From Octopus bimaculoides (lineage: Eukaryota): a stretch of 64,000 nucleotides of DNA. The stretch covers positions 3,035,004 through 3,099,003 of the forward strand of contig NC_069001.1 in NCBI RefSeq assembly GCF_001194135.2, written 5' to 3'. Shown here piece by piece: positions 22,901 to 43,900 of the stretch (its first letter is position 1; each line of letters opens with the position of its first letter). The notes beneath the pieces are model-generated. The model was not told the DNA's origin and did no database searches. It saw only the letters and a list, made by a program, of their open reading frames with translations. The position numbers and the translations under genes are program-made.

Positions 22901-25900
22901 GAACTGACAATGGTAAGAATAACATCTATTAATATCTTCAAGAGCAACTTCAACATTAACAGCAACAACAACAACAACAACAAGAATAAAGAACAGAAAC
23001 AACAACAAGGACTGCCAACATCTACAAGAACAGTTTCAACATTGACAACAACAATAACATCAACAATAACAGTAACAAGGATTATCAGCATCAACAACTA
23101 TGACCACAAGAAAATACCTGAAAGTGGAATACGAACCGAACAAAGTGCGGTGTCCCTGCAACCATCTTGGAGAGTAAGTCCATAAGAGAGTAACGGAAAT
23201 ATGACGACACAGTCTGCTGAATACGAGTCATGCTGGTTGATCCCTGTCCATGGCCCATCTGCAAATTGGAAGATGGAAGAATTTATGTTAGTTAAGGATA
23301 GAGAAGCATTTATTTGGATCAACAGCTTCTTCCCCGATTCCATATGCTTGTGTATGTGTGTTTGTAAGTATGAGTTTTGTTTTTATATATGTGTGTGTAA
23401 ATGTGTATATAAGTGCATTTAGTTGGTGCTTCCCAAATGCTTTGTGCATGTGTGTATAGTTATGTGTGTGTGTGTTGTGTGTCCCCGTCCTCACTGGGCC
23501 AGATTTCCACAGAACACAATATATGCCATTAGTTTGACAATGTAACCAAGAGAAATAGAAAATATAAAGTACATGATATTTCAGACAAACGTTCTTCATT
23601 GAGACAGAAGGAGAAAAGAATTAAAGAAAATAAAATTCTGAGGAAGCAACTGAATCGCATTGTTATTATCTTGCATCAACAGAACTTCCTTTACATTCTT
23701 TTTCCCTTCTCTGCTTATTCTTGATAAAGGGCAACCGTCCGAAACATCAAGTACTTATTATTACCTATCTAGTCCTTCCAATGTTTTACTAATATTATAT
23801 ACTGCCTATATAAAGGCATATGGGTTAGGATATTCAGCTCACAATCAAAAAGTCCTTGAGCAAGACACTTTATTTCAAATTGCCCCAGTCCACTCAGCTG
23901 TCAAAAATGAGTAGTACCTGTAGTTCAAAGGGCCAGCCTTGTCACACTCTGTGTCATGCTGAATCATCCTAAGAACTACATTAAGGGTACATGTGTCTGT
24001 GGAGTGCTCAACCACTTGTACATTAATTTTACGAGCAGGCTGTTCCATTGATCGGATCAGCTGGAACACTTGGCGCCGTAACCGATGGGGAGCCATATTG
24101 CCTATTTATGGTTTTGTTTACTTATCAATGTTTTTAAGTCCTTTTGTTGTGTTCTTGATAGATATTTACGCGAGGCTATATAGCTGGGCGGAGTGTGAGG
24201 TAGAGAGAGAGTGTGAAAGAGAGAGATGTAGAGAGAGAGAGAGAGAGAGAGAGAGATGGAGAGAGTAAAAGATGAAATGAGGGAAATGTGAGATATCACA
24301 CAAAGCAAAAGTGGAAAATTATATATATATATATATATAAACATACATACGCACACATATACAATATGCATACACACATGCATGCACACACACATACAAA
24401 TACACATACACATATACATACACACACAGAGAAATATATATTTACAACACATATATATATATATATATATATATATATATATATATATGTACATACACAT
24501 GCATTTATATGTATTCGTATACATACATGNNNNNNNNNNNNNNNNNNNNNNNNNNNNNNNNNNNNNNNNNNNNNNNNNNNNNNNNATGTATATATATATA
24601 TATATATATATATATATATATATATACATACTATGCTCACACACATCTTTTTCTTTTCTTTTTACTTGTTTCAGTCATTTGACTGTGGCCATGCTGGAGC
24701 ACCACCTTTAGTCGAGCAAATCGACCCCAGAGCTTATTCTTTGTAAGCCAAGTACTTATTCTATCGGTCTCTTTTGCCGAACCGCTAAGTTACGGGGGAC
24801 GTAAACACGCCAGCATATGCACACACATAAACAGACAAACAGACAGATAGATAAATAGGGACAGAGATTCTCACATTGGTTAAGAAACAGCAGACAACAG
24901 ACAAGAACACACATATTCATGCACACACATATACATATACATATATATATATATATATAATATTTAGTGTTAGTTCAAAATGCTTAAACACACCACAGCA
25001 CACATGTGTGTATATATATAGAGAGAGAGACACACTGCAAAAGAAGAAAGGCAAGCGAATGCAGCAGCAGCAGCAGCAGCAGCAGCAAGACTAGCTGGTG
25101 ATAGTAGTAGTAGTAGTTGTTGTTGTTAAGAATTACATATTGCTTTATTGATTTAGTAATGCTGTAAACCAATGTGACAAATACTTACAGATTTGTACTG
25201 GAAAAAAAAGACACAAACAAAAAAAAAATTAATTTTTATTACATTTGTAACAGCATATGTATAGACATATGCTTATATGTATATATATATATAAATATAC
25301 ATATGTATGTATGTATGCATGTATATATATGAATTATATACATATATGTGTATATATATATATATATGTATATACATATGTATGTATGTATGCATGTATA
25401 TATATGAATTATATACATATATGTGTATATATATATATATATATGTATATACATATGTATGTATGTATGCATGTATATATATGAATTATATACATATATT
25501 ATGTATATATGTATAGTTAAAAATTACACACAAGAAAACAACAACAAACAAAAGAAACAAGAGAGAGAACAACAAACAAGTTGTATCAGTTTGATGCTCA
25601 GGAAAAATGAAAGAAGTCTTTGATGTTTCAAGCCTATGCCCTAATTACATATTCATATATCCATAAACATATATCTATATGGTAAATGAAAGACGCAAGA
25701 TGGAATATACAAGAATTTTTATTAATCACAACGATTATTTCAGCATATCTTGCATTGAACCTTCAAGTGATGGATTGATGCTAGATAGGTCAAAACAATT
25801 GTGATTAATAAAAAATCTTGCATATTCCATCTTCTGTCTTTCATTTATCATATGCATAATGAACACTGGAAAGTGACCATGGTTTACCAGTAAGCTACCA

Positions 25901-40900: not shown

Positions 40901-43900
40901 TGTTATGGTTACTTACTCTGCTGTTGGAAGTTTGACGTGGGTCTCTGTAGTTGTTATTAACCGTTCCACCAGGCTGAGAATTACGAGATATGCCAGTAGA
41001 GAGGTTACCTGTTCAGGGAGACAAACAGACAGACAGATTGATAGATAGATAGATAGACAGACAGATAGATAGATAGGTAGAAAGATAGATAGATAGATAG
41101 ATAGATAGATAGATAGATAGATAGATAGATAGATAGATAGATATACAGACAGATAGATAGATAGATAGATAGATAGACGGATAAATAGATAAAGATAGAT
41201 AGATAGACAGACAGACAGACAGATAGATAGATAGATGGATAAATAGATGATAGATACACACATACATACACAGACAGACAGAAGGAAGAAAGGAAGGAAG
41301 AGATAAGAACTTTGAATATTGAGGATAAGCAAAGGTTGGCAACAGAAAGAGCATCCAGCTATTGAAAATGCTGCCTCCATTAGCATTCTGTGACCCATGA
41401 CAACAGTGAAAAAGATAATGATGATGATGGTGATGAAGAAGATGATGACTTTGAAGATGATGATATGGTGATGCTGATAATGATGACGATGAAGATGATG
41501 AAAAAGATGACAATGACAGTGATGATGATGGTAATGAGGTCACTGAGTACAGTAGGCACCTGAAGAAGACTGCAGTGTAACATAACAGCCAAAATATTGT
41601 GACCATAGCAACCAGAATGAGGACACCAGCCTATGGCAGTGCATCACAACTGGTGGGTATGATGAAATGGTCGTTAGGAAAGAGGTCGGGCTATAGCAGT
41701 CACGGAACTTACCAATCTTTGTGAGTGGGGTGTGGAATAAAGCTTTGACCACATTTTTAATCGACATTCGGAATAGATGGATCACTTCAGTTGGGAGCCT
41801 GTCTCGGTTCTTCTCCAGGAATCCAGTCGTTTGGTATTCCACCTGAGGATTTAAAACAACAACAACGTTTATTACTTATAGAGAAGCAGGGTACATTGTA
41901 TGTGTGTGGGGCCTATAGATGCCATGTGTGTGAAGGGTCATACAGGCAGCATGTGTTTGTGTATGGAAATGTCCATGTGAATGTGTCTGTAGTTAGTATA
42001 TGCCAATGTGTGTTACGTGTGTATATGTATTTCTGTGTGAGTCTATGCATGTGAGTGTATGCATGCACGTGTTTGTTTGTCATGTGTTATATATGTGTCA
42101 GTGTGTGTGTGTGTGTGTGTGTGTGTGTGTGAAAGTACAAATATAAATGACTTACCTTCCCAGCATAATGTTCAATAATAAAATTCAAGTTCTGTTCAGC
42201 CTTTGGTTTGATGTAGGCAGGGCATTTGATATTTTGGTGGAATTTTGCTGGGGATGAAAGAAGAAAATTCTTCAAGACTTGTTCGAATGAGACAATGAGG
42301 CATTTATTACAATGATTTGTCTTCTCTTTGTTTTCTTTTAAATGAACAGGTATGTTCCCAACCGAATAGCTCCAGATTCAGTCCCCATTGCATGGCATCC
42401 TGAGCAAGTGTCTTCTGCAGCTCTGGGCCAGCCAAAACCATGTGAGTGAATTTGGCAAATAGAAACTGAAAGAAGCTCATTGTTTATACATGTATGTGTG
42501 TGTGTGGAGCGCTCTGCCACTTGCATGTTAATTACATGAGCAGGCTGTTCCATTGATCGAGTCAACTGAAACACTCATCATCATAACCGACAGATTGCTA
42601 GTTATACATTATAATCATATGGACACATATGGCTTATCACATAGTCACATTACGTATCCACACGGATGCGGTGACCATGTAGATAATAGTTTGTGATTAT
42701 ATGTGGCCTGGTGGTTAGGGTGCTACACACATCATTGTAAGGTCAGAGTTTCGATTCCCAGACCAGGTAGTGAATTAGGTTCTTGAGCAAAACACTTCAT
42801 TTCACATTGCTCCAGTCCACTCAGCTGTAAATGAACCCCAACAATGGCTGGGAAGTTAACCCTGAGATGGACTAGCATCCCATCCAGGGGAATGTATTGT
42901 CATCTCAATTACTTAAATACCATGAAAAGGCAATAAGCTCTGGCATTATGAGGCTTAGGGCTTACACGAGGGAGTGTTGAAAAGTTCTTGGCTTTGGGTA
43001 AAAGAAAATACAGGAGGATCAGTTAATTATCGTTTTATTCAACATTTTCCCCTCTCAGATTCACACACTTATTGCAGTGGTCCTTTAGTTTTTCTAACCT
43101 TTAAAAGAACTTGGAAATGTTGGGCCTCCAGCCAGGCCTTTCATGAAACCCTTAAAGCTACAAATTTTTCAGCCCCCCTTCATAACATGCCTAAGATAAT
43201 GGTTTATCACATGTAATGTACACATGAGCTTATCCAATGGATACAGTGAGTTATCACATGGAAGATTATTCGCCATACAGACAGAGTGAAAGCTAAAGGT
43301 GCACAGAGCCAAACCATTAAAAGATAAGACACTGTGTGGCTTTAAGCCATCCTCACCATGGCCATCACTATGAAGTGAGATCCATACCTGTCAATGACTG
43401 GTCTGTTCCTTTCGGGAAAAGACTTTCTTCATCAAGGAGGGCTAATAAGCCCATTGGTTTCATGAGGAACATATCGAGTACAGGACGGTTGTCTTCATAG
43501 TCCACTTCAGCTCCATCAATTCCTTCAGATTCATATTCTTGCTGCAATAGAAAAATATTCATAAATATATACACATATACACATAAATATATATATATAT
43601 ATATATATATATATATATATATATATATATATATGGGAGAATGTACGAAAAAAAACAACAACAGACGAGGACAGGTGGTGTAAACAACAAAAGGATGTAT
43701 GTGTTAATGATATTAGCATAATGACTCTCCCTAGACACAACAAAATTTGTTTCAACACACAAACTCACATAAAGAAGCTTGCAAACCAGATATAAAAATT
43801 ATATGTATATACACACACATGTATATATATGTGTGTGTGTGTGTATGTATTTGAGAGAAAAGGAGCATGGAAGAATAAGAGATAAAAAGAAATTTTCTTT

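Follow-up and report, generated by a model that had tools for sequence, protein, structure and literature searches.

The 64,000-nt stretch of Octopus bimaculoides chromosome CM046621.1 (GCA_001194135.2) analyzed here, which is called the window below, carries a class III myosin gene on its minus strand, and loop 2 of the motor encoded by this gene is split by a long intron containing two 9-nt segments, YED and YKS, named after the residues they would encode. We conclude, with a probability of about 0.8, that this intron holds at least one genuine, conserved 9-nt microexon, YED, and that YKS is a plausible second member of the same array. This conclusion rests above all on the presence of a 9-nt insert resembling YED, at the identical junction, in the mature mRNA of a cuttlefish. 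Myosins of class III shape photoreceptor microvilli and hair-cell stereocilia, and loop 2 is the main electrostatic handle for a myosin's first grip on actin.

The Myosin III Gene and Its Loop-2 Intron

A locus retrieved by way of one of the window's proteins agrees with the window at 100% identity. The exons were placed by tblastn, using as queries an intronless myosin III open reading frame (ORF) from a metagenome contig and a full-length cuttlefish mRNA, and they span positions 54237 down to 1606 of the minus strand. They show 73% identity to cuttlefish MYO3 and 47-56% identity to molluscan and vertebrate MYO3A/B. The 1319-aa product annotated at the locus has Pkinase, Myosin_head, and IQ domain matches, and the locus therefore has the N-terminal kinase fused to a motor and followed by IQ that defines class III; the last kinase exons are located at 54235-53646. 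The 19-exon model of the motor and neck encodes 782 aa free of stops. Two minus-strand exons, at 52827-52982 in the kinase-motor linker and at 19239-19436 in the IQ region, were found only when the cuttlefish mRNA served as the guide.

The split coding region is flanked upstream by FLEKNRD (GFLEKNRD) and downstream by HFVRCLKPN, and its position between these two motifs marks it, by sequence context, as the loop-2 region of a class III myosin. The upstream loop-2 exon ends in CCA CGT CAA ACT TCC AAC AGC AGA/gtaagt, encoding ...PRQTSNSR, and all 40 complete codons of the downstream loop-2 exon are 100% identical to those of a cuttlefish protein (P0010, see below). A preliminary description of the window had placed a 17.7-kb phase-0 intron here and called it the longest one fully contained in the window: both its borders (40916..23259) and its rank were confirmed, the other motor-domain introns measuring only about 0.3-1.5 kb. 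The two frame-preserving 9-nt segments which it reported, each with an acceptor and a GTAAGT donor, were both recovered, in one copy each. About 58 copies of AGAT form an (AGAT)n array (41027-41256) that stops 19 nt short of the upstream loop-2 exon's acceptor, on the upstream side of it.

The Insert in Cuttlefish mRNA

A protein search with the 782-aa octopus model led to P0010, a 1216-aa ORF carried by a 5.9-kb Logan RNA-seq contig from SRR3011300, a whole-animal RNA-seq run of Sepia pharaonis (PMC5541922), and 73% identical to the octopus model. P0010 belongs to a cluster of four members including Sepia (Acanthosepion) pharaonis MYO3 and P0131, a full-length 1581-aa ORF from a second run (SRR9969967). 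Both cuttlefish contigs (L054/L055) are continuous through the loop-2 junction, which reads AGC AGA/TTTGAAAAT/ATG GGC, the insert encoding Phe-Glu-Asn (FEN). The junction predicted in the octopus reads AGC AGA/TATGAAGAT/ATG GGC: the insert is again 9 nt long, it occupies the same junction, and it shares 7 of its 9 bases with that of the cuttlefish, the residues pairing as Y/F, E, and D/N. Since a 9-nt insert with 7 of 9 bases alike is present at the identical junction in cuttlefish mRNA, we take this correspondence as proof that the YED exon is real and has been conserved in both octopus and cuttlefish. The YED ortholog is present in mature mRNA in these two cuttlefish RNA-seq contigs, and the inclusion of YED in the octopus is predicted from the genome. 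When spliced in, YED lengthens loop 2 by three residues, placed after ...TSNSR and ahead of MGHGQG; the conserved QQTV at the end of the loop follows about 14 residues later. The preliminary description had proposed that both segments are real microexons, and it is the YED part of this proposal that the cuttlefish mRNA ortholog, found in two runs, bears out.

When the 40-aa downstream exon was used in a representative search, P0010 was the sole cephalopod match. With 71 aa of loop 2, a search of the protein collection by a word index that is lossy for short queries gave only short ORF fragments of other invertebrates and none of the cephalopod proteins, and a scan of metagenome contigs with the downstream exons yielded insect and other invertebrate myosin III loci and no cephalopod. 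In the mollusc-like contig L030, loop 2 is interrupted by an intron at a comparable position, and nothing further was seen. Cross-phylum alignment of loop-2 proteins was discarded as a means of distinguishing between the included and skipped forms, both of which align about equally well to the S/R/G-rich low-complexity loops of insects and gastropods.

Splice Signals of the Two Segments

The acceptors of YED and YKS are CAG with 12 and 13 pyrimidines, respectively, among the 15 preceding bases, and both donors are GTAAGT. Both segments preserve the frame, contain no stop, and have the anatomy of microexons (27-30 nt or less, bounded by AG and GT). The strings AG/TATGAAGAT/GTAAGT (33629-33613, minus strand) and AG/TACAAATCT/GTAAGT (25199-25183, minus strand) each occur once in the window. 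These signals resemble those of the gene itself, where all 17 acceptors have 11-15 pyrimidines and GTAAGT is present in 9 of the 18 donors; a base other than G occupies position -1 in 5 of these 18 donors, all five of which then read GT(A/G)AGT, the class to which the donors of both candidates belong.

Upstream of the YED acceptor, UGCUGCUG, carrying UGC motifs, is located at 33647-33640 (minus strand), given as 10-17 nt upstream of the first base of the exon, and the closest upstream AG is 89 nt away. A cis-code of eMIC/SRRM-dependent microexons has been reported (PMC8797185), and UGCUGCUG, the branch-like CTTAAC, and the long AG-free stretch at YED would fit this code. At the YKS acceptor, the closest upstream AG is 72 nt away, the region is free of UGC for about 50 nt upstream, and an AT microsatellite array (25274-25515) adjoins the segment on its upstream side. 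The coordinates of the features of the loop-2 region are given in Table 1.

Table 1. Features of the loop-2 region of the octopus myosin III gene, in window positions.
Feature	Position	Strand	Remarks
Upstream loop-2 exon	40917..41008	-	92 nt; ends in phase 0; donor AGA/gtaagt
Loop-2 intron	23259..40916	-	Phase 0; 17,658 nt including 401 N in four gaps
Exon-like segment in loop-2 intron	37392..37448	-	Terminal exon of 2015 O. bimaculoides models (UniRef A0A0L8IHL0, A0A0L8IIK8)
YED 3' splice region	33628..33669	-	Branch-point-like cTTAAC 33669-33664, pyrimidine tract, CAG 33630-33628
Microexon 1, YED	33619..33627	-	9 nt; TATGAAGAT, Tyr-Glu-Asp
YED donor GTAAGT	33613..33618	-	
YKS 3' splice region	25198..25232	-	TTAAT branch-like motif, long T-rich tract, CAG
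Candidate microexon 2, YKS	25189..25197	-	9 nt; TACAAATCT, Tyr-Lys-Ser
YKS donor GTAAGT	25183..25188	-	
Downstream loop-2 exon	23137..23258	-	122 nt; starts ttgcag/ATG GGC CAT GGA
Assembly gaps in loop-2 intron	24530-24585, 33046-33055, 34062-34269, 39677-39803		
Scaffold block	39804-44283		Carries upstream loop-2 exon
Scaffold block	33056-34061		1,006 bp; carries YED
Scaffold block	24586-33045		Carries YKS
Scaffold block	21512-24529		Carries downstream loop-2 exon

In order to estimate how often such segments arise by chance, exons were scored throughout the window. When a GTAAGT donor and at least 12 pyrimidines among the 15 bases before AG were required, YED and YKS were the sole exons of 30 nt or less on both strands of the whole window. 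A position weight matrix (PWM) trained on the gene's own splice sites (17 acceptors and 18 donors) placed the two segments 1st and 4th of 116 in the window; with this gene-trained PWM, YKS had a higher combined score than any other exon of up to 30 nt in the window, which amounts to 128 kb of strand sequence. With thresholds set near the weakest real sites of the gene (the acceptor at the weakest one and the donor slightly below), no frame-preserving cassette of up to 300 nt other than YED and YKS was found in the loop-2 intron. The probability of obtaining two in-frame hits, calculated from decoy rates on the antisense strand and in other introns, was about 0.01-0.15, depending on the scoring. 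By themselves, these splice-site statistics are suggestive, not conclusive, for both segments. A long tandem repeat at 1-1230, whose minus strand has open frames rich in NERT/RTYV and whose plus strand repeats ACGT/TCGT motifs, gave rise to spurious splice-like candidates at 358.

Assembly of the Loop-2 Intron

The four gaps in the loop-2 intron all lie outside the coding pieces, and the frame is therefore unaffected. The four coding pieces sit on four separate scaffold blocks, which means that their order and orientation depend on the scaffolding, that the intron length is an estimate, and that unread sequence could hide further exons. The order of the upstream exon, YED, and the downstream exon matches that of the cuttlefish mRNA. 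The intron is dense in TA, CA, and ATT microsatellites (49 Tandem Repeats Finder rows), repeats of this kind edge the gaps, and no transposon-like ORFs were found in it. A pseudo-exon derived from a transposon or dispersed repeat was considered for both segments and rejected: the exon cores of YED and YKS are unique within the window, and self-BLAST of the 300 nt on either side gave only AT/CA microsatellite matches.

Weighing the Alternatives

Several observations weigh against reading the intron as an array with YED as its proven member. A generic PWM ranked the two segments only 11th and 19th of 123. The length of the AG-exclusion zone was dropped as a discriminator, as the constitutive exons of the gene have equally long zones. 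YED sits on a contig of about 1 kb positioned by scaffolding, and its inclusion in O. bimaculoides itself is something that we infer from sequence. No skipped isoform was seen in any cephalopod, the four-member cuttlefish cluster showing the included form only, and YED may for this reason be constitutive rather than a switch. As regards YKS, a counterpart is absent from both cuttlefish contigs (P0010/P0131), the segment adjoins the AT microsatellite without any nearby UGC motifs, and decoys as good as YKS occur about once per 17 kb on the antisense strand. Two further points, which concern the other animals, are given in the next section.

The status of YKS is accordingly less certain than that of YED. 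Neither transcript nor conservation support for it was obtained in any of the species compared, and only 4 of its 9 bases agree with those of FEN, so that the claim that both segments are real microexons does not extend to it as it stands. We place YKS as a second microexon of the same array at a little under even odds. The strongest competing explanation, which we hold to be evenly balanced, is that YED alone is real and YKS is a chance pseudo-exon in a T- and microsatellite-rich intron, in which case there would be at most two isoforms instead of four. In keeping with it, nothing corresponding to YKS is present in the two cuttlefish mRNAs, the pyrimidine tract of the segment adjoins the microsatellite array, UGC is absent near its acceptor, its donor scores just 4.9 with the generic PWM, and decoys of similar quality exist, such as one at 28384-28398 on the plus strand (13 of 15 pyrimidines, GTGAGA donor) and a 26-nt pseudo-exon at 42991-42966 on the minus strand. 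On the other hand, YKS has an excellent acceptor, is in frame and stop-free, and scores best with the gene-trained PWM, the loop-2 intron of the mussel Dreissena bears two independently used microexons, and a YKS exon of low inclusion or restricted to some tissues would escape a whole-animal consensus contig.

The 26-nt pseudo-exon just mentioned (42966-42991, minus strand) has a good acceptor and a GTAAGC donor and is located between the exons at 43541-43388 and 42247-42156. It was rejected as a real exon, since homology leaves no space for it, and it serves here as an example of a decoy.

A less probable but still serious explanation is that YED is a constitutive microexon missed by the gene models, the intron then consisting of two or three ordinary introns and involving no switch. 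Both cuttlefish contigs carry the insert and cross the junction unbroken, and there is no skipped form in the four-member protein cluster. This constitutive reading is based, however, on two runs, one of them from a whole animal; the annotated isoforms of Dreissena, six fishes, and Anolis use loop-2 microexons at the comparable position alternatively; and the UGC beside the YED acceptor is typical of regulated neural microexons (PMC8797185).

That both segments are chance matches to the splice consensus and are never spliced is highly improbable: although the generic PWM gives about 19 candidates in the window a score equal to or above that of YED and the decoy rates permit a P of up to about 0.15, a 9-nt insert sharing 7 of 9 bases with YED at the identical junction in the mature mRNA of another cephalopod order is very unlikely to have arisen by chance. 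Even less probable is the idea that the sites serve the recursive (stepwise) removal of the long intron, leaving nothing in the mRNA, as the single very long intron among short ones and the strong paired 3' and 5' splice sites deep within it might suggest, since a recursive site requires AG followed directly by GTRAGT while AG is followed here by TATGAA or TACAAA, no 5' splice site is regenerated upon joining to the upstream exon, and the orthologous 9 nt are kept in the cuttlefish mRNA.

Loop-2 Microexons in Other Animals

The RefSeq isoforms X1-X4 of Dreissena polymorpha (XP_052238009-15) differ only by the presence or absence of IYSAL and of QKNLVS, and all four combinations occur. IYSAL is encoded by a 15-nt exon and QKNLVS by an 18-nt exon, both located inside a 7,129-nt phase-0 loop-2 intron following ...SSMGGSR. 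The four-isoform array proposed for the octopus is consequently realistic, the Dreissena forms corresponding to none, A, B, and A+B, but its octopus version is incomplete in that YKS is unsupported and no skipped cephalopod form was seen.

In the snail Bulinus truncatus, a 3,734-nt phase-0 intron at the same place as that of Dreissena contains ATTTATCACCACTTA, which encodes IYHHL. This 15-nt segment (L058:16155-16169, JAGDYQ010000004.1) is unannotated and has the acceptor ttgtttttcag and the donor gtaagt; IYHHL is clearly a homolog of the Dreissena IYSAL. In vertebrates, the presence or absence of 7 aa in loop 2 (SPKYLLK and variants) distinguishes MYO3B isoforms in Synchiropus, Clarias, Poecilia, Gasterosteus, Salminus, and Anolis sagrei, and MYO3A of Cynoglossus has a variable segment of 14-15 aa in loop 2. 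In Synchiropus, the insert is encoded by 21 nt; this exon lies in a phase-0 intron of 1,403 nt and has two UGC motifs shortly before its acceptor. No loop-2 variation was seen among the listed rabbit isoforms.

A simple rule, calling for an AG whose 15 preceding bases include 10 or more pyrimidines, a segment that is open in frame, and a donor of the form GT(A/G)AG, recovered the mussel, snail, and fish exons with zero other matches on the sense strand of these introns. Applied to the longer octopus intron, it returned YED, YKS, and three weaker matches. No octopus homolog of the molluscan IY..L exon was found in the loop-2 intron. The two remaining points that weigh against our interpretation arise here: the mussel and snail intron follows MGGSR and the cephalopod intron precedes MG, and because of these differing positions the bivalve/gastropod and cephalopod introns may not be strictly homologous; in addition, the microexon sequences of the various groups cannot be aligned beyond their common Tyr.

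The preliminary description had also presented these microexons as undescribed in cephalopods. Our literature search yielded no paper on class III myosin loop-2 microexons or on cephalopod myosin III microexons, and a review of class III myosins names only neck and tail splicing (PMC6981383). The claim of novelty therefore holds for cephalopods, within the literature searched, and fails more widely: automated annotation already in the public domain shows loop-2 microexons of this kind in one mussel, several fishes, and one lizard, and splice inserts in loop 2 are well known in class II myosins.

Gene Models and the Tail Region

Gene models break at these exons or miss them in O. bimaculoides (2015), Sepia pharaonis, and Bulinus. 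The S. pharaonis genome model P0130 starts at MGHGQG, and hence breaks exactly at the loop-2 intron, and the Bulinus gene model lacks the IYHHL microexon. The 2015 O. bimaculoides models P0011/P0133 contain the peptide of the upstream loop-2 exon; they splice this exon to the exon-like segment at 37392..37448 (minus strand), which cuts off the predicted motor within loop 2. This segment may be an artefact of the annotation; otherwise it is an alternative 3' end that truncates the product. As far as annotation is concerned, the case of YED indicates that a splice-site scan, taken together with transcripts from other species, can bring out exons of 9 nt from long cephalopod introns.

Further observations were made downstream of the motor. 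The octopus myosin III gene appears to have been split in two by RefSeq, the 1319-aa model ending near 16876 and LOC106874065 covering 13387-1881 on the minus strand. The product of LOC106874065, P0007, starts in sequence that is internal to the tail of the cuttlefish P0131, and the exons at 13417-13355 and 1899-1606 match residues 1334-1354 and 1424-1525 of P0131. An open frame of 808 codons (8484-10907, minus strand) lies in the tail region and is used in part in P0007. Its homologs P0008 (ENA contig L053) and P0009 show 38-39% identity, and in the cuttlefish mRNA this region is represented by only a short segment; from these comparisons, the frame has the appearance of a large tail exon, either lineage-expanded or alternative. 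No match was obtained when the 794-aa tail ORF was looked up exactly. Lastly, the S. pharaonis P0130 and the Logan mRNA P0131 differ in the tail by 9 aa, VGTTPYYDA after ...KMFDAKQ, a segment which may be another small alternative exon.

Proposed Mechanism and Comparison With Known Systems

The literature confirms the background on which the preliminary description drew, namely that loop 2 of class III myosins is phosphorylated and influences actin affinity (PMC6981383, PMC10982375). In MYO3A, the autophosphorylation of two loop-2 residues lowers both kcat and actin affinity (PMC10982375; also PMC6981383). In Limulus myosin III, loop 2 undergoes phosphorylation by PKA and by autophosphorylation, according to the titles of works cited in a review (PMC6981383). 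If a conserved splice-coded insert in loop 2 is confirmed, it would constitute a second, unreported regulatory layer beside this phosphorylation.

The mechanism we propose is that the octopus exons would be alternatively included and that their inclusion would be driven by the neuronal or photoreceptor microexon machinery, with which the UGC motifs beside the YED acceptor would fit. The computed net charge of loop 2 would be +5 in the skipped form, +3 with YED, +6 with YKS, and +4 with both, and each insert would add a Tyr, YKS also adding a Ser. The changed charge would tune actin affinity and the actin-activated ATPase, as the phosphorylation of loop 2 does in MYO3A; by analogy, YED would weaken and YKS would strengthen the initial interaction with actin. 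The tissue specificity, the charge tuning, and the phospho-switch of the octopus inserts are matters that we infer only.

A wider interpretation, which we find doubtful, is that these exons belong to an ancient module present throughout the bilaterians, comprising the cephalopod YED/FEN with or without YKS, the bivalve and gastropod IY..L with or without QKNLVS, and the vertebrate MYO3B SPKYLLK. One or two alternative Tyr-containing loop-2 microexons under neuronal or photoreceptor control would set the actin affinity and tip localization of the myosin in microvilli and stereocilia, beside the kinase-driven phosphorylation of loop 2, and the octopus exons, being opposite in charge, would form a four-state code.

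Among the systems already on record, the Dreissena isoforms are close to this scheme: they involve the same family and loop, a phase-0 intron, and two tiny frame-preserving exons, the first with a Tyr and a GTAAGT donor. The exons measure 15 and 18 nt, however, versus 9 and 9 nt in the octopus, the intron is 7.1 kb long instead of 17.7 kb, it follows MGGSR instead of preceding MG, and the sequences cannot be aligned beyond the Tyr and the Lys...Ser. The Dreissena system is known from automated annotation, and we found no paper describing it. The vertebrate MYO3B SPKYLLK exon is likewise alternatively included within a phase-0 loop-2 intron, contains a Tyr, and has UGC near its acceptor, as YED does, whereas it is a single basic exon (+2) of 21 nt in an intron which is short (1.4 kb in Synchiropus).

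In the non-muscle myosins II (NM IIA2, IIB2, IIC2), nervous-system-specific cassette inserts in loop 2 alter or abolish the actin-activated ATPase and alter motility (PMC10480317). Here too, cassette exons insert residues in loop 2 at the actin interface, but these myosins belong to class II, the A2 insert has 21 aa as compared with 3 aa for each octopus segment (PMC10480317), the inserts are single rather than arrayed, and no kinase domain acts on the loop. The microexons of the SRRM3/4 (eMIC) programme resemble the octopus segments in being 27 nt or less in length, frame-preserving, and located in a surface loop, as well as in their strong branch-like motif and extended AG-exclusion zone (PMC8797185); YKS departs from them in having no UGC nearby, and such exclusion zones are not peculiar to the candidates in this gene. 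The phosphorylation of loop 2 in class III myosins, finally, acts on the same loop and through the same expected lever, added negative charge lowering actin affinity and kcat, but it is post-translational and reversible, whereas the candidate mechanism in the octopus would be fixed at the RNA level.

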